Shown here piece by piece: positions 12,666 through 64,000 of a DNA stretch of 64,000 nt (position 1 is the stretch's first letter; the number at the start of each line of letters is the position of its first letter). This DNA comes from Chara braunii. Taxonomy: Eukaryota > Plantae > Charophyceae. The stretch covers positions 4,743,075-4,807,074 of the forward strand of contig BFEA01000005.1 in NCBI GenBank assembly GCA_003427395.1, given 5' to 3'. Position numbers and translations under genes: made by a program. A model generated the notes under the pieces. The model was not told the origin of the DNA, did no database searches, and saw only the letters and a list, made by a program, of their open reading frames with translations.

Positions 12666-12722
12666 ATGACGGCCGAGACGGCAGCTGAGGTCGCTAAAGA
12701 GCTGGAGGCACAGAAGCATGAG
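12666..12722 (+). CDS. NACA: NAC alpha subunit, coding exon 1 (MTAETAAEVAKELEAQKHE)
   Basis: ATG at 12666, 19 codons, then donor GTGAGA at 12723 (phase 0); joins exon 2 in frame. Confidence 0.8.
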
Positions 12723-13186: not shown

Positions 13187-13277
13187 GAGCCAACCGTCGA
13201 GGACGTAAATGATGACGATTCGGATGACGAGGAAGATGATGACGACGTTCCCGACCTGGAAGAAGCCCAGCATGAAG
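13187..13277 (+). CDS. NACA: NAC alpha subunit, exon 2 (EPTVEDVNDDDSDDEEDDDDVPDLEEAQHE)
   Basis: Acceptor ...ctctatgttgcag ends at 13186 and donor GTACGT starts at 13278 (phase 1). The acidic tract ending in VPDLEE is typical of the NAC-alpha N-terminus. Confidence 0.92.
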
Positions 13278-14869
13278 GTACGTGTCTTTACTGATCTTAT
13301 CTTTATACTAGGCATCCGGAAAATTCTGTTCTGATGCATTGAATGGAATCAGATTTGGACTGCTATATACTATGCCTTCTATTCCAAACAGTCTCTGTCA
13401 TCTGTCGTCTCTTTTTCCTTCCCTTAGACGATATATGCCAGTTTATGGCAGTGTATCTCGCGAGCAGGTGCTCTCTGTTGGAGTGTGAGCCTCTTTTAGC
13501 TCCTCCTTGGCGTCGTTCTCCCGCACTCTTGAGGGCGTGGTCTCCATGGCTGTGCTATCCGCCAGGTCATGACGATTACTCCCATCTCGTAGGTCGTTTG
13601 TCAAGTTCTCATCGACAAGTACTGAGACTGTAAATGAGTTTGCTTCGTTTCTTTTGTATGTTCTTTTATCGATGTTGTAACCTATTCTTACTTTGGTGTG
13701 CGTGCTGTCGACTGCATGATTCGATCAATGCCTTCTGAGAGGGCCTCCGTCGTCGAATTGTATTCTCCGCGCCTCCTTTGCTCTCTTTTCGATTTCACTG
13801 CTTGCTCGTTGTCTTCCTGATCCCTTCATCGAGTGTCCGAATCCCTGGGGATGTGTACTTATGCCCTCGTACTCAAAACCTTCCGTTAAGCCTCTCGCCT
13901 TTGCTACGCGCGAACTGGTTTTAGTCTTATGTGAACTCCTTCAGCTCTGATTCCGCAGCATATTTTTCGGGCGTGTTTAGCTCGTGTTATTTGGATCGAC
14001 TCATATTTACGAGGGGCGTCATGAGTGAATATATTGGAATATGTTTTGTGAGGCGCTTCAGCATGTCCAGCCGTGACTGCTATCCCTTTCGCGTGTCGTT
14101 TTGCTTTCTTCTCTGAGGTTTTCTTTTCCCTTCGAAAGAGTTATGTGGCGTGCGGGGCATAGGCAAAATTGTCGTATCTATTCGAACCCTAGCCAGGCAC
14201 AAATCAGCACCGCGGATGCTGTATTTGTCCTGAGGTTTGTTAGGTCATGGCGCACATGCCATATCTGAGCCCTAGCTGCGACTTAAGTTTCAGCCAGCGA
14301 TGTTCCCCCTCCAACAGGGGTCTTACGTCGTGGAAGATCTGCTCGGCGTGAGGTTCCGAATTGTGGCTCCCCGGTGTCGTAGCCCTCCTTTTTTTCGTGC
14401 TTGTGTATTGGCCGTCTTCTTCTGTGTTTTGTATCTTGTGCCGGATCTTGATTTACTCAGCCAATCAATTTTCGATGGCCGGTTGTTCAATCTGAGTTCT
14501 TCAAATTTTCCATACGTTGGGTAAAATTTCCGTGTGTTCCTTTCCACCCTGCATGTTCTGCCTCTCTCTTGATTACCATCTCCGGCTTGTGCATCCTTGC
14601 GAGTGCACATTCAAAAATTTCCCCTCCTGTCTATTTTCTACTCTGGCTTCCTCATAAGTGGGGTATCACGTCATACCTAATTTTCTCTATTTGCCTGTCA
14701 CATTAAATTTGCAAGTCCCTCAGACTCGTGCTTCGCGCGTCCCTCGGACTCGTTGTACGATCACCTTGTTCGTCTACCTGTAACGAGTTTCTTTGGGATT
14801 CATATCTATGCCTGACCTCCGTGCCTATCTATCCAATTATTTTAGTGCTTGCCTGTGTCCTCACATCTA

Positions 14870-15810
14870 CTCTTATGTGCGTGGCTTTATGCCTGGGTTG
14901 CTCTCCTCATGCTCCGCTTCCCTCCACCTGCGTTGATCCTCTCCTGCGGCGCTCCAATCTTCCGCAACTATTTCCTTCGTGGGTTCTCCCGTCCCGCCTG
15001 GCTTTGAAGTCTGCTGTTCCCCTCGTCCGTGACCACCCCCTCATGCGCGACTTCCCATTGTTGCGAGTCTTTCCCGCGTGCTTTTACCGTCTTGCGTGGC
15101 GCTCGCTCGTCTTGCGGGGCTGTTTCATATCTTGGGTGGCTCTCCCCGGTCTTGCTTGCCTCTCCCCCATCTTGCGTGGTCTTGCGTGGGTCCGTTCATG
15201 TCTTGCCTCTCCGGGGTCCTGTATGGATCCTCCCATTTTGGCTGCGCCCCCCGTCTTGGCTTCCCCTCTTTCATATCTTTCGCCCTCTTGTGTGGACCCC
15301 GTCTTGGTCGGCCCCCCCTCCTTCGTGGGCGTCCTCCGCACCATGCAATTCCCGTGCTCTTGCTCGGCCCTCTTGGCGGTTGCCTCTTTCTTTTCCGGCT
15401 CCCTCCGGTCTTGCGTGCCCTCCTGTGAGGCTTCCCCCTTCGTGGTTACTGTCACCCTCTTACGTGGCTCACTGTCCTCTTGCGTGGCCTATCCCCCTCT
15501 TGCATGGCCCACACCCGATGTGGTTCTTCCTGTCGTGTGGCTTACCGTTGAGTGGAGCATCCCTGTTTTGTGACGACAGCCGTGTTGTGTGGCTCACCCT
15601 CTTGCTTGGTTCAGCCTCTTTCGTCGCTTACCCTACTCCTGCGTGGTACGACCCGGTTTTGCGTGGCTCAATCCCTTTCGCGGAGTAACCCGCTTTTGCG
15701 TGGCTCAGCTCTCTCTTTTGGCTTAGTTTTGTATGGCGGCATGCCTGCGCGGCTCCCCTTCTGCAAGACTATGCTTCTGCGTGGCTTCTTTTCTGCGTAG
15801 CTGCCCCCCT
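14870..15810 (+). repeat. Degenerate ~19-bp minisatellite (core TTGCGTGGCTC) in NACA intron 2
   Basis: About 20 recurrences of tgcgtgg-like cores, with ~18-21 bp spacing over 15410-15800. Confidence 0.75.
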
Positions 15811-19100: not shown

Positions 19101-19325
<225 letters not shown>

Positions 19326-21374
19326 TAACGCGGTTCCTCTTCGACATTTCCTGACGGAAGGCGTAATTAATCCTTCCTCGTGACGTGGATATTAGCACTG
19401 CAGGTAGTCCAGAGGGTGCTGCCTGCTTTTATCAAGGCTGGTGTGCTCCGCACGTCCTGTGATGTAAAGAAACAACTATTGCGAAGAGAAATGGAGAAGA
19501 AGGAATAACTCGAGAGCAAGAGTTGGCTTGGTGTCACTTGAAGTTGAATCCGTATTCCTCATCGGATGTTAAACACAAACGGCAAGGTTGATCTTGGGAA
19601 AAGAACGTCGGGTGGCGAAGTTGATCTTCAACTAGGGAACGGAAGGCACTGATATTGAGGCTTGATTTGTCCCGCGAGGAGGGCAGTTGGAAGATGAATT
19701 GGGGTCATTATGGTTCTCTGATGTACCGGGTCCGTACTGTGGTGTTTGGTTAATGCTTGCGAGAACCCGAGTTTACTGTTGTGAACAAATGCCTGAGACT
19801 CCGTAATTCTGGATTTTGCAGACTAGGTTCGAAACCGTGCTGAGTCTGTCATCGATCTTATGGAATTTTGAGGCAGAGAGAACATCGGCTTGATCTATGA
19901 ATCCAACAGACATTTCCACAGCGAGTTTATGGAAAGGGGAGGGGAGATATTCATGGTGGTCATGTATTTCTTATCTTGTCTAAGGTGTTTGATTGCTGGA
20001 AGATTTGACACTGCGTGGTCTGAGAGATTGTGACTCTCCATGAGAGTTTGTTCTTCACGTTCGGTGAACTGCATGCCAGAACCTCAAGAACATCAACAGG
20101 GAAGCTAGATGCTCAATGACTGTGAATTGCGCAAGAAAGTACAGAATGGAAGAGGCCTTCTTTATCTAGTAATCAACGTTTCTCCAGCCCAAAGGTGCAG
20201 GGAATAGCTAGGCCGAAAGGGGCGTGTATCTTGAAGAGCAGGGTAGTGGATTGCACGGGAAGGGAGCGGAAACCAAGCTATGATACATCTTCTATGGCCA
20301 AGCTTCTGTGAGGAGCTGTAGGTTGAATTTGCAGAGCAAGGAAATGCTGATTATCATGTGATTGCTGCCCGCAAAGTCCCTTTGAGACTCACTCTGAGTC
20401 GGATAGTATTGGTTGATGATGCGCGATTATTATCGTTTAACGATTATAGTGGGCTTGAACAGGCGACCTGTCTGTCATCCATGATGGACACGACGGACTT
20501 CCAGGTCTACTCACATTGGGCGGTGGGTCTGGCGCTGTTCGGTGCTGGTGTCAATTCTGTTCTCTGATCACACAGAATACAAAACAGGCCGAGGAATCCG
20601 TCTTGACGTGCGTGATCTCCAGCGGTAGCACTCCGACCGGTCTACATTCGTCAGTGGTAATCTGTACCAGGGGGACAGGAAATGTTCTTGATGTGCATAA
20701 TCTTCCCGTGATGTGCGTAATCTTCCAGTCGACCTACAGATGTCCGAGTAGGTTCTGAGATCCCTATCCCTACATTTATAATATCGCATACGCGAGAAAT
20801 CTGCCATCCGGGCCGTCCCGGTCCTACCGGCCCGACGGTTCGGATTGTCACCTGATCTTAAGACTTTTAATCTCGGCCGTTGGCCAACTGGTATACGGTC
20901 GATCGTGGCCCGATCTTAAAATTTTAAGATCGCACGACCATCTGCCCCGTCGGGCCAGGACCATGGACGGCCTGGATCATCGCGCGACGGTCGACGGCCC
21001 AGATCGTGGCCCGATCTTAAAATATTAATATCGCACGACCATCGGCCCCGTCGGGCCAGGACCATGGACGGCCTGGATCATCCCGCGATCTTAGAAGTTC
21101 GCAGCACAACCGAAGTTAGGGCTATCAGGCGTGGGGAGAATGCGGCTCCAGGCGGGCCGGTCTCCTCTAATCGTATAGGGCGCCAGCGTTTCGGCCTCCG
21201 TGCGTATCTTTTGTTGCGCACGGAGCCTGTGTATAGCGAACGAGACAATGCGCACTCACACGGCTTCCCGCCACCCGCCCGCCCGCTCGAACAAGAACAT
21301 GCACAAACACGCATATGGACGCACACACGCACGAACACATGCACATGCACGCACGCACGCAAATGCATCATGGG

Positions 21375-21431
21375 CAGACTGTCGGGGTTCAACCTCCTGA
21401 TGAGTTGGTGAAAGTCCAACATAACAATCTG
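21375..21431 (+). ncRNA. Decayed type III hammerhead ribozyme motif, copy 1
   Basis: CAGACTG-TC / stem I GGGG-TTCAA-CCTC / CTGATGA / stem II GTTGG-TGAAAGT-CCAAC / ATAA (canonical GAAA) / CAATCTG. Confidence 0.65.
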
Positions 21432-21508
21432 GCACAGTCGGGCTTTTCCGGGGGGTTCACGAAACACACGAACCGTGGGTGGGTGGGTGTGCTGAAATGC
21501 ATCACGGG

Positions 21509-21565
21509 CAGACTGTCGGGGTTCAACCTCCTGATGACTTGGTGAAAGTCCAACATAACAGTCTG
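21509..21565 (+). ncRNA. Decayed type III hammerhead ribozyme motif, copy 2
   Basis: Same layout 134 bp downstream, with perfect stem III (CAGACTG/CAGTCTG) and intact CTGATGA. GAAA is changed to ATAA and there is a C-C mismatch at the base of stem II. Confidence 0.65.
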
Positions 21566-21653
21566 GCACAGTCGGGCTTTTTTGGGGGGTTCACGAAATA
21601 CACGAACTGTGGGTGAGTGGGTGTTCTCGTGTGCGCCTGCGCGTGCGCACGAG

Positions 21654-21685
<32 letters not shown>

Positions 21686-22468
21686 AGGTAGAGAGCGAGA
21701 GAGAGCACTCAAGCTCACCACCATGACGACGCTGACTGATGGAAATGAGGATGACGACGGCGATGAAGATGAAAGATGATAATGGTGTCGGGAAAGGGGG
21801 CCGAAACAGGCTATAGTGGTTTTGTTTTTCTTTTCTACTGAGTCTGATCGCGAGGGGGAGACGAAGACGAGGAGAAAGGCGAGAAATAGCAAAAGAAACA
21901 CGAGGGAAAGGAAGGCGGAAGCCGAAGAGGAGGGAGGGTAGGGAGGTACAAAGAGATGGAGCTGGTGGAGGAGAAGGGGGAAGAGGAGGACAAAGGAGAG
22001 ACGAGAAGAGGGAAAGGAGGGGGCCGAAACAGGCTATGGTCGTTTTGTTTTTCTTTCCTACTGACTCTGATCGCGAAGGGAGACGGAGCAAAGCGAAGGG
22101 AGGACGAGGAAGAGGGAGAGGAAGACGTGGAGGAAAAGCAAGGTGAAAGCTTAAAGGAGGGAGTGTAGGGAGGTAGAAAGAGATCGAGCTGGAGGAGGGG
22201 AAGTGGGAGGAGGACAAAGGGGAAGGACGAGAAGAGGAGGGAAAGGAGGAAGAATTGGAAAGGTTAGGGGGAAAGTCGAAAGGGTGGGGGGCGAATGCTA
22301 GAGGTGCGAAATGGCACCACATAGATGCGCCATGTGGCGCGGATTTTTTCGTTTTCTCTTTTCCGTTATTTGTTTGTTTGTGTTTGTGTGTTTGTGTTTG
22401 TGTGTTTGTGTTTGTGTGTGTGTTTGTGTGTGTTCGTGTGTGTGTGTGTGTGAGAGAGAGAGGGGGGG

Positions 22469-22499
22469 NNNNNNNNNNNNNNNNNNNNNNNNNNNNNNN
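22469..22499. other. Assembly gap (31 N)
   Basis: N run. Confidence 0.99.
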
Positions 22500-22615
22500 G
22501 CCGGGGGGTTGAAGGTGGGAAATCGTGAACGTGGCTAGGATACATGGTGCGGAATCGTGCTTTCTTTTGACTTCTCGGTTTAATGTGTTTGTGCACACAC
22601 ACACACACACAGAGG

Positions 22616-22657
<42 letters not shown>

Positions 22658-22914
22658 GTGGGAAGGGGAGAGAGCTCGGGGGAAGTCGAGGTGGTCTTCG
22701 GTGGGTTGAAGGCGTGATGTCGTTTTTCGTTTCCTGTGTTCTTTTCGGTTTGTGTTTGTGTGTGAGAGAGAAGGGAGATAGAGACATAAAGAGAGAGAGA
22801 GAGAGAGATGGGTGAGGGGGAAACCGGTCGACTTCGGCGGTGGGTGGGGGGAGGTGAAAGTGCGCAGCGTGACACAATCTGTTTTCACGGTTCCTTTTTT
22901 TTTCCCGTTTCGTT

Positions 22915-22945
<31 letters not shown>

Positions 22946-23321
22946 GTGACGGGGGAGGGGGAAGTGTTAGCGGGGAAGGGGAGATAATGTAGAAGTCTGT
23001 GCAGGGGGCGGAAGGGGAGATCAGGTAGAAGTCTGTGGATTTTCTTCGTTTTCTGTTTTGTACGGTTTCTCTGTGTGTGCGTGTGTTAGAAAGGGAGGGG
23101 AAGGGGAGATAAGGTAGAAATCTGTGCAGGGGGCCATACGTGTTATTTTTCGTTTTCTGTTTTTTACGGTTTCTGTGTGTGTGTGTGTGTGTGTTAGAGA
23201 GAGAGAGAGAGAGTTTGCATCTGTCGGTTGCCTCCAGATTTTCTGCATCACCGGTCGCGTTTGTTCTTGCGATTGAAGCGGTAATAGGTCATGTAGTATT
23301 GGGCTATGAGTGCTGTGCTAG

Positions 23322-23756
<435 letters not shown>

Positions 23757-25191: not shown

Positions 25192-26848
25192 TCCCTACAC
25201 TTGATAGAAATTGCTAACGTGAGAATTGGGCAATCCCGGCTGGCCACGGTCCTACCGGCCCGGCGGTCCAGATTTCCGCACGATGTTGAAGACTTTAAGA
25301 TTGCGCGACCATCCAGGCCGTCCATTAGAGACGCTTTGTTGCTTGTCTCTCTACTCTACTTGTGAAGCAGCCCGCGACCTCTTAAGGGCCCATCAACAAA
25401 ACGAGAACATACAATACAAAATGAAAAACGAATGGTTATTTCAGATTTGCTTATATGGACGCTGCAGAGCATTGGCAATACGGATTTCAAGATGCAGCCA
25501 CTCCGACGCTCTGGATCAAAGAGGGCCTGTACGGGATGGTAGGCACTGGAAAAAACTGTCGGGCCTAACGCCCAGTGGATGTTGGGCATTTGCCAGCTGA
25601 CGGCCCGTTGAGTTCAGGGCCTGGTCATACTCTATGCGCGACCCGGTGACAAACTCTACAGGATGTGCTGCATCGTAACGAAGCTGACAAACGTCTTATA
25701 GACTCTCTCTGCGCGCTGAATGTGTGGCTCTCTGAATTTATGGCTCTGTAGTGTGGCTGATGTTTCTTGCTGACGGTCAAAGGCGCCCTCTTTCCCCTGC
25801 GAAAGCAAGCACGCACATGGACACATACATACCCGTGCATGTTCACATTCGTAATCTGGACACGCACATGGTCACACGTGTATGCACTTGCATCCTGGAC
25901 ACATGCCCACGCATGTATGCACTTGGATCCCGGGCAGACTGTTGAGGTTCCTCTCCTCTATGAGTAAGTCCTGCGAAACAGTCTGTCATTCTTCGCTTTT
26001 GCGGAGTTATGTATGGCGAATGTGACAATCACACGCACGAGCACAATCATGCACACGCACACGCATACACATCGGCACACACACCAGCGCACACGAACAA
26101 ACCCATTCACGTGCGCACACACATACACACACACCGGGTTGGTGCGTTCTTGCTGGAGGAGTCTTCTGTCTTAGGTTAGCTGTCTCGTATCTTATTCCTC
26201 TTTGGGAGTGACGCTGGTAAGTAGTTTGGGATGAATGTCAGGAATTCCAATGCTGTCATATTTGATTTGCTTTTGGTAAATTAGTTTTTTGTGGGGCGAT
26301 GTGGAAGGCTCTCCTTGTTTTTTCGGACCTTTCGAGGGGTCCGGGTCGGTTTTTCTTGCTGGAGTGGTCTTCTGTCTTAGGTAAGTTGCCTTCTGCCCCC
26401 CATCCCCTTATGGTTTGAAAGATACATGTATGCATGTGCATATGTGCGAGTGTGCCGCTTTTCTGGCAGACGGGTGTCTGGGCACTTGGCGCTGAACCAG
26501 GCAAATGTGGCCAACCTTGCATTTTCTATTATATTGCCTATCTATACTTTTCGTTATGGATGGCTTGTGGTGATTTCTCGAGGGAAAGAGAGGTAATCTG
26601 GGGTCTTTTAAAACAACACGCGTGCACACGCACACAACATGCACACATACCTCATAATAGCGAACATGGCAAATATCCAAGCAGGCGCACTTGGTTGGTA
26701 AAATTCCGCAGTAGGAAGGAAGAGGGGCAGAAAGGGCTCGAGAGTGTTCCGCAGTAGGAAGGAAGAGGGACACAGAAAGGGCTCGAGAGTGCCGCAATAG
26801 GTGGGGAGATCTACAGGGGCCTAACCGTGAGCACAGGGTGTCGACTAG
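25192..26848 (+). mobile_element. Candidate non-autonomous Helitron (1657 bp) carrying a hammerhead-like motif
   Basis: A|TC start and CTAG|T end (26845-26848), preceded by an imperfect GC hairpin ccgtgagcacagg. No TSD or TIR. Homologous to the intron-3 element. Confidence 0.5.
25935..25985 (+). ncRNA. Decayed type III hammerhead ribozyme motif, copy 3
   Basis: CAGACTG-TT / GAGG...CCTC / damaged CTGATGA (..TATGA) / GTA-AGTCC-TGC / intact GAAA / CAGTCTG. Confidence 0.55.
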
Positions 26849-31148: not shown

Positions 31149-32210
31149 GCAAGGAAAATGAGAAATAGCTAAATGACAGAAACCTAGAGAGGCAGCAAGT
31201 CCATCGCAGAAATGAGAAGCAGAAATGCACCGATATTCCACCAACGGAGAACCAAAACACTGAACCTGATTGTCAATGGGAGCGTACTTTTTTTTAACTG
31301 ATCATAACAGATACTACACTTGATCTTAGCCAAAAGGCTGAGAAAGGTATGGGGGAGCATACTTTCACCATCACCAACATATGTATCCAGAGTCCTTCCT
31401 CCTACTTGATGATTAGTGCCCAGACTTCGATCACACAACTTACTAGCTGCCTACAAATTGACAATGCATCCAGGTGACGTCAGCACCAAAACTGATATAC
31501 ATGAAGATGTTGACCCTTGTAGACCATCTCCAAGACCAGGTAAGTTCCCTTACATCACCAACCTCGTCTCTCGCTCTCTCTCTCATCCTCACTCTCTCTC
31601 TCATCCTCACTCTCTCTCTCATCCTCGACTTCATCATCCACGTCTTCTCCCTCTTACATGAAGACCACCGCCACCTCCCGCTGACTGTCCAAGCCTAAGC
31701 TCGACTACGTGGGATGGGCTACGGCGCTGCCATCAACAGCGCCCTGCTTATCGCATGGCAGCACGCACGCGTGCAGACTTTCCATACATCAGCGCAGCAG
31801 CCCGTGAGCGCTAGCTCTAGCAGCGATGCCGCATCAGCATGCAAGTGTTCGATCCCCGACACTGAGCCGTACATTGAGCCCTGCACTGAGCCCTGCCCTT
31901 TCATATATCAAAAGTGACGACTTGTTTCTCTGTCCTTGTGAGCTTAGTATGTGGGCACAGTCCTCACCCAGGTATCCAGGTGCTCTTCCATCTGCTTGTC
32001 GCAAGAGAGTCAGCAAGGGTATCTTGGGGGTCCACTGCATGGGTTGTATAACAGCCTGTGCCTGCTGCATTGGTTGTGAAGCCAATGGATCCGTCTGCTG
32101 CTGCAGCACTTGCTACTGTAGGGGTAACTGTTGCACAAACTATTGTACATGCGGCGGCCCTCAGCGGCAACCGCTGATTACGAAAGTGAAGAAGGTATCG
32201 GAATCTGACC
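31149..32210 (-). mobile_element. Decayed Gypsy gag-like fragment (dispersed repeat; related copies at 36340-36910 and 40190-40520)
   Basis: Q-rich MLQQQTDP...QWTPKIPLL on the minus strand. The nucleotide block aaggaaaatgag...aatgcacYRaYatWcc...cacaact(t)acta is seen three times. Confidence 0.6.
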
Positions 32211-42039: not shown

Positions 42040-42330
42040 AACTCTGGGAGATGGACTGCCAACGACCCTCTGGTGTGGGTAGGGTCTGAAGTAACCCATA
42101 CGGAAGGTGGTTCGCACAATTCACCTCCTGGCACGTACGACACTCCTGGATGTAGGCTTTGACGAAGTCCTTCGACTTCGGCCAGGCGTATAGGTGGCAA
42201 ACACGAGCCAACATCTTTTGGAGACCCATATGGCCGACAACTGCCCCTACCCATACCTGAGGGTCGTTGGTGGGAGAGTCTTTTGACCATAAGGCAAATG
42301 CACCGTGCGAGAGTATCACGGTTCAATGTC
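42040..42330 (-). mobile_element. Gypsy integrase zinc-finger fragment, same family as element 1
   Basis: GHMGLQKMLARV..WPKSKDFVKAYIQECRTCQEVNCANHLPYGLLQTLPTPEGRWQ parallels the translation at 2100-2280. Confidence 0.88.
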
Positions 42331-45300
42331 GTACAAGCCGGTGAAAGTTCATCAAAACAGTCTAGCGTGCAGCCGGCCACTGCCCGATTGACTTGTTACC
42401 CATTTTCTTCTTCTTCTTCTTGTGCCCCTATTCTCTCCCCCCCTAATTGTCTTGTCTATTCCCCTCTTCTCCTTCTCCTTCGTCTTCGTCTCCTCGCCAC
42501 TACATCGCCGTGTCCGTTGTGTCGTAGCTATAGTAGCCATCGTCGTGTTAGTTCTTCCTCTCCCCATGGCCGATCATTTTTCTCCTCGGTCGCCTTGCTC
42601 CCCTCTATCACCGACCTCCCTCTCTTATGTATCCTCTCACCTCTCTCTCCCCCTCTCCTCTTTCTCTCTCTTTTCCTGCTATCCTTCTTCTTCGTCTCCA
42701 TCGCACGTCTCGTCAAGCCATCAACCATGAATCCGACCGAAATTGCGGACAAATTCATTGTGAAAAATGAAAAATGAATAATGAAAATACTTGCGTCATT
42801 ATTGTTCTTCCATCTCGTTCTCCGCGTCTCTCTTCTCTCACATCCTTCTCCTTTGTATAATGCATCCTCTACTTTCTACTACGTAAGCCTAAGAAGGGGT
42901 GGATCTGAAAGAGAAAGCAGATGTAGGCAAGATGGGGGCAAGGGCGGCGGAAAGGAGTGCAAGTCAGCGTCCCACACACTGAAGATCGGCCATTCGCGTG
43001 TCTCTTATGCTTCCGCAGGTTCACCTACGGGAACCTTGTTACAACTTTTCCTTTGTCTAACTCGATTGTGTCTTCTCCACATCTATCGAAGACTATTTTG
43101 CATCTTTCCTCTTTCCTGTGCGCATTTACCTTCCATTCACCACACTCATGCTTCTGCACCATTGAGTGCGAACTCCTCCATCACCGCACGTTGCTCCCCT
43201 TCGTCGTTCTCCTACTCTCCTATGATTCTCCTTCCTTCCTCCCTGCGCTCATCCTTCCTTTCCTCCTCTACATACTCTTTTTCCCTCGTGCCCATTTGCC
43301 ATTTTCCGCGTATACTCCTTCCTCGGTCTTATGACCTCCTCCTTGTTGCCTTTGCATTTCTCTCGCGGCGCGCGGTTCATTCTCCATCTCCGTTTTGCGC
43401 GCCTTCTCCCTCGCACGTCGCCACCATCTCCGTCCATTCACCCATCAACCCATTCGAACGCCCGCGTGCTGCCTCTCTCTTCTCCCATACTCTAGTTTGC
43501 AGTCCAATTGGGATCGGGTAATGGTCAGATCCCCCTTACTCACGACGGATCGAACTTACCCCTCGGGGATGAATCTGCTCCATAATTTTTAGGGAGATTT
43601 GAAAATCCTAACGTAAAAAGACAAAAAAAAGATAAAAAATAAAGATAAAAATAAGAGATATGGCAATAGATTTGATCTAAAATCTAAGAGAAAGTACAAT
43701 AAAATAATTCGTTAATAACTAAAAAAAAAAAAACAACGAGAAAAATTTAATGACTATGGATCCCATTGTGCCAACTGTCGAGCATAGGTTCTAAATCTAA
43801 CAAAAACTAGCCAACTAACAATTCGCGGGAGTGAGTGAGTTCGAGGCTGAGTTCTTGGACTGTCGTGGTCCGTGGGGCCTGCTTGGGGTTCTAAGGGGCT
43901 CGTTTGACAGTCATTGGGGTGTCCTCGGGGCCGAAGGAAGTTTCCTTGGGGGTTTTCAAGGAAATTCCCGTCGTCATTCCACCTGTCCTCGGGGACGTCG
44001 CCCGATGACATTTCCTTCGAACGATGTTAGACAAGAAAAAAGAAAAGAAAAAAAAAATCAAATCTGTTTGAGGTTGTCAGGCAATAGGGTGCCGCCACGA
44101 TCCAGATTCTCGGTTGTAACGTCTCTCTACCCATATGCCTGCTCCTCTCCGTGAAACGCAGATTCCTTTTGCCCAAGGGACCTCTTGAGGTCCCTTGGGC
44201 AAAAGGAAGAAATGGTAGGGGAATCCTCGGAGCCCAAGGAATTTCCTTCGGAGTGTTTTAACTTTTTTTTGTTTCCGACTGCATCCCCAAGGATAGGTGG
44301 AATGAACAATTCATTGGGGACTTTACGTGCCCGAGGAGTGTCGAACGAGCCCCTAAAGCTAAAAGAGTTTGCCCAGTGGGCCGCATGTCTCATTCCCTCA
44401 TGCAAGTTTGATTGGTTACCTACAAGGCTAACTCTTACTACAGTATGGTAATGAGATGTCTTCCTATAAGTGGATATTAGCCATCCTTACCTTATAGGAA
44501 AATTAGGCCTATCCGTTTTCTATTTTTTTCCTTAGTCGCCTCGGCCGCTTGGCCGGGGGCTTTATTAATTTTCAACCCCCGTTCGGACACGCGTCAGCAT
44601 AAACTGTTTGCCCTACTATCGTGTACGCTCGCCGCCCTTTTACTTGTGTTCGTGAACGTATACCCTATCAATCTTGACCATACGATTGGATACAGTTCGA
44701 ATGTCGTCGGTCTCTAGGCTTATCGGCGTTTTGCCCCTAGTTGTATAACTAATGTACCGACGGTTACCCTGTTCAACAAGTAATCTCTTAATAGTCCCGA
44801 CCCTACAGTGAGGATTTTACGACAGTTCTAATCATGCCGTCGGGCTTTAAGAGCGTTAGCATATTAATCCCAAAGTTTTACACACACCTTTAACCTCGGG
44901 GGTTGTTTTATTTTAAACCGCTCCCCCCCCCCCCCCCCCCCCCCCAATCTTCCAAGGTCGGAAGGGTTAAATACTAATTCTAACTGTCCTAACGCGCGTC
45001 ATGATAACGTGTGCATGAGCTAACCAATTTTTTTGTCCCATACGCCTCGGGCCTAATGGCCAACATGTTACGCAAAAGTGTGGACGCTTTTCAGTTCATT
45101 TCTGGCTCCGATACTGTAGCCGAAACCGTCACTCCATCGAATAAAAATACACGAACAAATACCCTTGTGGGCGTATTAGACCCAACATCTTAAAGTGTCA
45201 CACAAAAGTAGGTAATTGTTTTCATCTCAAACCGGCTTCGACATGGTAGTCGATATCGACGTTCTATCGAATGCAAACACATGGGTAAACATCCTTGTAA

Positions 45301-58465: not shown

Positions 58466-58503
58466 CTGTCTCTTATACACATCTAGATGTGTATAAGAGA
58501 CAG
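58466..58503. other. Nextera mate-pair junction adapter (two Tn5 mosaic ends); assembly contaminant
   Basis: CTGTCTCTTATACACATCT+AGATGTGTATAAGAGACAG exactly, at the contig end next to a gap. Confidence 0.98.
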
Positions 58504-63195: not shown

Positions 63196-64000
63196 TGTGT
63201 GTGAGAGAGAGAGAGAGGGCTTTACTTGGACTGCATATATGCTACACCGACGAATCCAGCGGTTGCTTGCCTGGATTGGAAGGTCTGGGCAACGTTCTTA
63301 AGGTTCATCGCAACGGGGGTAGAATGTTGTAACTATCGATCTTGAACGGGAATGCCAGAAAGCGCAAGTCATCGGCTCGTGCTGATTACTACCCTGCCCT
63401 TTGTACTCACCATCCGTAGCTCCTATCGATTGATTGGCCTCGTGAAGAGTCGGGGTCGTGATGATCGTGGCGGTAACCACTTAGGGTGTTGTGAGAAGTT
63501 CGTCAGACTTCGCCATTTGGAGGGAAGAGAAGTGAACTGCGCTGTAGGAGAAGACAGAGAGGAAAGAAGAAGAAGAAAAAAAAAAAGAAGAAGAAGAAAA
63601 AGAAGAAGAAGAAGAAGAAGAAGAGGAAAGGAAGCTCATCATGACGGGGATAGATTTTTGTAATTATCGATCTTTAACGAGGAATGCCTATTCAACGTGA
63701 GTCGTCAGCTCACGCTAATCACGTTTCTGTCGTTTGTACACACCGTTGTCGCTCCTACCGATTGAATGGGCCGGTGAAGCATCTGGATTGCGGTGATCTC
63801 GACGGTTTGCCGCTGGGGATGTTGTGAAAAGTTCATTGAACCTTATCATTTTGAGGAAAGGAGGTGCTGAAAGAAGAAGAGGGAGAAAGAAAAGAAGAAG
63901 AAGAAGGAAGGAGGAAGAAGAAAAAGAAGTAGGAGTAGAAAGAAGAGGAGGAGAGGAGAAAGATTACCTGAGCATGCAGGCGACTCCGACAACGGCGGCT

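Follow-up and report, generated by a model that had tools for sequence, protein, structure and literature searches.

Two tandem 134-nt units in intron 3 of the NACA gene of the charophyte alga Chara braunii most probably represent a dead, 5'-truncated copy of an abundant non-coding retroelement, characterised by a canonical type III hammerhead and by probable Penelope-like mobilisation, that was later duplicated locally; we put the probability of this reading at about 0.8. Both units lie within a stretch of 64,000 nucleotides, referred to here as the window. Every homologue with a name of a Gypsy protein encoded in the window is a C. braunii protein, and the further loci cited below (L001-L010) belong to assembly GCA_003427395.1. 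Judging from the anatomy of its copies, RNA of the family probably cleaves itself after a GUC triplet, and a Penelope-like reverse transcriptase of the Chlamys clade, the candidate partner, would then copy the RNA back into (CA)n or (TA)n tracts by target-primed reverse transcription, a process that would yield 5'-truncated, head-to-tail and inverted copies. One copy retaining the region 5' of the cut site would have come to sit in a CA-rich tract, inside a Helitron-like repeat within NACA intron 3. By comparison with the family, its core was lost by CpG decay, which produced G12A and altered both sides of one stem II pair, together with A13U. Duplication of 134 bp of element and flank would have followed, an order suggested by the changes that the units share, with each unit later being damaged further.

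The two units (Table 1) differ at 10 positions over 134 nt and both have the topology of a type III hammerhead, with three stems, of which stems I and II are loop-closed, and an NUH triplet. The placement and register given by an earlier, sequence-only reading of this DNA, namely two 134-nt units in sense orientation in NACA intron 3, were confirmed, the exon 3 junctions being supported by reads. The GUC triplets with predicted cuts after 21383 and 21517, stem I, the exact CUGAUGA and the AUAA that it had described are likewise all present. The core of CUGANGA and GAAA is not intact in either unit, as AUAA replaces GAAA in both. The stems are less regular than that reading had it: stem III, CAGACUG/CAGUCUG, stands overall but has one mismatch in unit 1 (A21427, giving CAAUCUG), and hairpin II, GUUGG..CCAAC, is found in unit 1 only, since unit 2 has C21538, a change of G10.1 to C by which the conserved G10.1-C11.1 pair is lost. 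One stem II pair is altered on both sides at the locus with pairing kept, and both of these changes are CpG transitions. The 3'-terminal 22-37 nt of the 134-nt unit consist of CA-/GT-rich flank.

Table 1. Features of the NACA locus and of hammerhead-related copies in the window, numbered from its first nucleotide.
Feature	Position	Strand	Remarks
NACA coding exon 1	12666-12722	+	ATG, GT donor, in frame; predicted from sequence only
NACA coding exon 2	13187-13277	+	Junction to exon 3 in RNA reads
NACA coding exon 3	19117-19250	+	Spliced reads at both junctions
Mid-copy host repeat	20762-21200	+	A/TC start; 101 bp duplicated internally; resembles (76%) the 5' end of the Helitron-like element at 25192-26848
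Tail-only remnant	21222-21250	+	Family 3' end, upstream of the CA-rich tract; matches the family tail in reads; the model was built from it and two other tails, so its score is not independent
CA/CACG-rich tract	21280-21360	not assigned	Probable insertion target
Tandem unit 1	21361-21494	+	5'-truncated type III hammerhead retroelement copy (~21361-21457, perhaps to 21472) plus microsatellite-like flank
Hammerhead motif 1, predicted inactive	21375-21431	+	GUC, predicted cut after 21383; CUGAUGA 21397-403; AUAA 21421-24 (G12A, A13U); stem III mismatch A21427
Tandem unit 2	21495-21628	+	93% identical to unit 1
Hammerhead motif 2, predicted inactive	21509-21565	+	Predicted cut after 21517; CUGAUGA at 21531; G10.1C at 21538; AUAA 21555-58
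NACA last coding exon	23418-23756	+	NAC and UBA/HYPK domains; reads
Hammerhead copy 3	25935-25985	+	GUU, broken CUGAUGA (CUCUAUGA), 6-nt stem II loss, CGAAA kept; then family tail 25996-26031 and (CA)n
Hammerhead copy 4	~42270-42366	+	Heavily decayed (CAAAA); ~25 nt of family 5' extension kept; 5' part compared by eye with the read consensus

The Rfam model Hammerhead_3 (RF00008), a check that the sequence-only reading had proposed, matched unit 1 with 34.1 bits (E=1.5e-4), below its gathering score of 48.5, and no hammerhead at the gathering threshold was found in the whole window. A relaxed type III descriptor identified 2 sites in the window versus a mean of 0.05 over 60 shuffles, and the 87-nt regions of the units have no folding advantage over shuffles (z 0.27 and -0.20). 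The units resemble RF00008 in their full topology and differ from it in G12A and A13U, present in both, and in G10.1C, present in one. G12A alone slows the full-length hammerhead about a million-fold (PMC2553840), and the native units should not cleave today, leaving instead with the spliced intron.

The NACA model was checked exon by exon and by reads. Splice reads join exon 2 to exon 3 (350 reads) and exon 3 to the last exon (522 reads), with an RNA depth of 420-570 on the exons and mostly 3-19, on the sense strand, in the intron. Because the reads join these exons and lie on the sense strand, the tandem can be placed in sense orientation in intron 3 (19251-23417), which is spliced normally. 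No pile-up of RNA ends was present at the hammerhead cut sites in two oligo-dT runs, which is weak evidence. A fall in intron read depth past ~20730 was considered as a sign of cleavage and rejected, as it sets in at the hairpin-rich host repeat, 650 nt ahead of the cut site.

For the family as a whole, a DNA run was matched to the locus at 80% likeness. Depth was 10 on unique intron DNA versus ~104,000 on the first hammerhead bin, a summed contig depth that gives an order of magnitude only, rather than a copy number, and that points to thousands of relatives. About ten copies or pieces occur in a biased sample of Chara DNA, 262 kb long when Ns are left out. The majority of family reads have G at 21421 (78%) and 21555 (85%) and A at 21422 (96%) and 21556 (97%), corresponding to CGAAA. 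In the family, the third position of stem II is a C-G pair and positions 21427 and 21538 are both G; a base other than A at position 13 makes up only 3-4% of family DNA depth. In addition, a genomic copy with an intact core, of the kind for which the sequence-only reading had proposed a search, was found in another Chara locus (L010:17047-17102, + strand; Rfam 46 bits, E=9.8e-8). One ground on which that reading would have been refuted, the lack of an intact core in every genomic copy, is thereby removed. In stem III the L010 copy has a U-A pair where the subfamily of the tandem units has C-G. Among 8 copies, two pairs are changed on both sides, a number not above shuffles in this small alignment (204/500). 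Because 78-97% of related reads and contigs have the letters of GAAA where the tandem has AUAA, and because the L010 copy is intact, the family is a genuine type III hammerhead family. An upstream hairpin at ~17001-17022 of L010 stands beside the intact hammerhead, and the two together would make a good natural substrate for a cleavage assay.

The proposal that the tandem is left over from a mobile, ribozyme-bearing family whose ancestor was canonical is supported by the family reading of GAAA and by the existence of the intact copy. The argument offered for it, a canonical consensus of three copies, fails, as the majority of the three reads AUAA; the canonical core is seen in the reads and in L010. 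The third copy does keep CGAAA, as had been noted, but has the other lesions listed in Table 1, and the list of three had missed both the fourth copy and the tail remnant. Copies 3 and 4 lie outside NACA intron 3 and are at least as decayed as the tandem units. Directly before copy 4 is a Gypsy integrase fragment (42055-42270, 76% like 2097-2277) containing a 26-bp inverted repeat (42059-42084 / 42245-42270), possibly a fold-back made at insertion.

Family RNA reads, from oligo-dT libraries, map to the two strands in comparable amounts, in keeping with dispersed copies being transcribed passively, and no accumulation of family RNA ends was evident in these reads. Intact family cores were not detected by a pattern scan of metagenome contigs or viral contigs, and no family copy was present in the Gypsy-centred Chara loci L001-L005 or in L009. 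The papers searched contained no description of this family.

The order of events at the locus can be approached by scoring the first 87 nt of each unit against the family read majority. By this measure, seven differences are common to both units, including G12A and A13U, and three of the seven are CpG transitions; one difference is private to unit 1 and two are private to unit 2. Since both units have the inactivating letters and few family sequences have T at position 13, the core appears to have been dead before it was duplicated, and the simplest order would be inactivation first and the 134-nt duplication second. Local duplication is common here, as two further two-copy duplications that hold no ribozyme (101 bp at 95% and ~225 bp at 80%) lie at most 1.5 kb away. 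The left edge of the duplication is also the 5' truncation point of the element, and a Penelope-style partial-tandem insertion from an already dead template is a possible alternative that also fits, while gene conversion could have homogenised the units after separate histories. By either duplication or partial tandem, there would never have been two active ribozymes 134 nt apart, unless gene conversion erased that history.

The sequence-only reading had suggested that the ancestor could excise a 134-nt monomer, the unit then being the natural monomer of a tandem retrozyme from which a pair of active ribozymes would once have freed an RNA of 134 nt, linear or circular. Such a history would account for two hammerheads in register 134 nt apart, and the canonical core of the family and the coincidence of the unit boundary with the element start speak for it, yet we regard it as very improbable. 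The core defects are common to both units. Constant family sequence continues 5' of 21360 (127 DNA contigs, 220 RNA reads) and is absent from the linker that precedes unit 2; beyond 21439 the units part from the family tail; and the unit includes flank. DNA depth drops to ~26 at 21594-21650, near the value for two local copies, and the predicted monomer (21384-21517) folds worse than shuffles (z=+1.26). In animals, moreover, tandem retrozymes have type I hammerheads and a length of 150-450 bp (PMC7229834), which 134 nt falls short of. A back-joint from 21517 to 21384 was not among the joints listed, these coming from oligo-dT libraries, which cannot show circles. The 134-nt monomer is, from these comparisons, not a family unit. 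An origin of the motifs by chance resemblance has a negligible probability: the score of unit 1 below the gathering threshold is the one point in its favour, set against the E value of that match, the excess of descriptor sites over shuffles and the canonical family majority, and it is already refuted by the intact copy in L010.

It could also be supposed that the AUAA form is a domesticated or variant element, with a slow ribozyme or an RNA structure kept to tune the processing of NACA pre-mRNA. The AUAA of unit 2 recurs in an RNA run whose sample carries other SNPs and indels in the intron (contig 21539-21650, one difference), and the stem II pair changed on both sides still pairs. The same two stem II changes are, however, CpG transitions, each unit has suffered further private damage, the 87-nt regions fold like shuffles, and the cut sites lack a pile-up of RNA ends, leaving domestication hardly credible. 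Because copies 3 and 4, outside the intron, are also dead and CpG transitions make up three of the seven shared changes, ordinary decay is enough to explain the present state of the locus, and selection is unnecessary. The same holds for the suggestion that loss of activity was tied to a sense position in the intron of an essential gene, which the condition of copies 3 and 4 renders superfluous.

A separate question, compatible with the family explanation, is whether the dead hammerhead reached the intron as a passenger captured by a non-autonomous Helitron-like element and not by retrotransposition. The host repeat upstream of the tandem has a DNA depth of 70-790 versus 10 for unique DNA, and its relative at 25192-26848 is a non-autonomous Helitron-like element, with an A/TC start, a weak hairpin and a CTAG/T end, that carries hammerhead copy 3. 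The hosts at 20762 and 25192 resemble each other at the 5' end (76% over 107 nt), and each has, 600-740 nt into its sequence, a hammerhead whose truncation point is about the same. Single DNA contigs that join host position 20845 or 21162 to the hammerhead start show that other loci combine host and hammerhead. Both Helitron ends are plausible for 25192-26848, whereas the intron host copy has the 5' end only, no CTRR/T 3' end having been found for it. The similarity upstream of the two hammerheads is of low complexity (67%), and the family tail precedes the hammerhead in one host and follows it in the other, an arrangement that fits independent insertions into a CA-rich target. Capture by a Helitron is a tentative alternative, rather less likely than not.

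With regard to mobilisation of the family, Penelope-like elements, including the Chlamys clade of Chara, are known for 5' truncation, partial tandems, inverted copies and (CA)n targeting (Craig et al. 2021, PMC8557442), and two Chara Chlamys subclades carry hammerheads (PMC8557442). In a small sample, the family copies in L006 (1660-1803) and L008 (21400-21721) have their starts within loop I or the core, just 3' of the cut site, and lie next to (CA)n/(TA)n, either stacked head-to-tail or accompanied by an inverted partner. A (CA)n or (TA)n tract adjoins the copies in L006 and L008 and window copies 1-3, and is not found beside those in L010 or copy 4. Because this anatomy matches the insertion features of Penelope-like elements, self-cleavage followed by target-primed reverse transcription by a Chlamys enzyme is the route that we infer. 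The stretch L008:21400-21721 represents a second subfamily, with CAGUUUG as the 3' strand of stem III and a longer tail, in direct and inverted 5'-truncated copies between (TA)n runs.

The likeness to Chlamys elements thus extends to the host genome, 5' truncation, partial tandems, inverted copies and (CA)n targeting. Chlamys elements differ in encoding a reverse transcriptase and a GIY-YIG domain, and in the type I hammerhead of the two hammerhead-bearing copies compared (L006 and L010). The comparison covered five Chlamys loci (L006-L010), found by a HMMER search with a reverse transcriptase fragment, and the Chlamys subfamilies of Chara are far more numerous. Searching proteins with a GIY-YIG fragment of Chlamys gave no matches. 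Chlamys-type pseudo-LTRs, 97% identical, were located at L006:8912-9527 and 14681-15301 and at L010:8641-9367 and 13883-14610, with a minimal type I hammerhead, very short in stem III, at L006:9193 and 14967 and at L010:9203 and 14446. None of the Chlamys elements at the five loci shares the family tail, and no terminal sequence in common with the family was found in them. Because the pseudo-LTR hammerhead is of type I and unrelated in sequence, and the tail is not shared, derivation of the type III element from a Chlamys pseudo-LTR is not supported, and the element does not appear to be a simple derivative of the sampled subfamilies. A frameshifted Chlamys-2-type Penelope-like element lies next to a Gypsy element at L001:11640-15060 (- strand); no hammerhead was found on its 3' side, which contains a gap.

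Among known hammerhead retroelements, the LTR retrozymes of flowering plants (summarised in PMC7761336) share with the Chara family a type III hammerhead, a non-coding retroelement and a streptophyte host. The Chara family differs in microsatellite targeting and 5' truncation, and in having no LTR pair, tRNA-Met primer-binding site or 4-bp target-site duplication. An assignment of the tandem to the plant LTR retrozymes was rejected on the spacing of 134 bp and on the absence of an LTR-like repeat pair 600-1000 bp apart, of a primer-binding site and of a target-site duplication; the search for the binding site, limited to tRNA-Met, covered up to 7 kb from the locus, and the flanks of the tandem do not repeat as a 4-bp duplication. 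Animal non-LTR retrozymes have type I hammerheads, tandem monomers of 150-450 bp and circRNAs (Cervera and de la Pena 2020, PMC7229834; Li et al. 2026, 10.64898/2026.07.22.740005). Like the Chara family, they are short, non-coding and hammerhead-bearing, have no LTR or primer-binding site, occur as monomers and dimers at very high copy number and are probably mobilised by Penelope-like elements, many of their genomic dimers being inactive. Unlike them, the Chara family is of type III, belongs to a charophyte alga and is mostly dispersed and 5'-truncated, the 134-bp period being local. At the tandem itself, the hammerhead is type III and not type I, both cores are broken and the linker does not belong to the family.

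As a dead local duplicate that is spliced away, the locus matters little in itself; the family, which is noteworthy, matters more. In published schemes, type III hammerheads go with the LTR retrozymes of flowering plants, and type I with the retrozymes of animals that lack LTRs and depend on Penelope elements. These pairings are mixed by a charophyte element of high copy number that combines a type III hammerhead with Penelope-style insertions. The analysis adds to this picture the intact copy in L010, an order of events at one locus and the contrast of type I with type III in the comparison with Chlamys. A further proposition, which we consider unlikely, concerns the parent family and not this locus: active, free of LTRs and equipped with a type III hammerhead, the family would be moved in trans by the reverse transcriptases of Chlamys elements and would give rise to small circular RNAs as well, with Helitrons as possible carriers of dead copies. 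If true, it would connect animal non-LTR retrozymes, plant LTR retrozymes and hammerhead viroids through a charophyte. With copies in the thousands, one could also ask directly whether introns are purged of active ribozymes on the sense strand.

Several minor features accompany these loci. The window contains a 5' fragment of U2 snRNA, probably a pseudogene (31279-31350, - strand; Rfam 53 bits), and a decayed 18S rRNA fragment beside a (GT)n tract (63216-63400, + strand). A 38-bp palindrome before a gap (58466-58503) resembles a residual Nextera mate-pair adaptor and is likely an assembly artefact. Dispersed copies resembling U6 snRNA occur at L008:581-685 (Rfam 81.5 bits) and L006:16302-16404 (61 bits).
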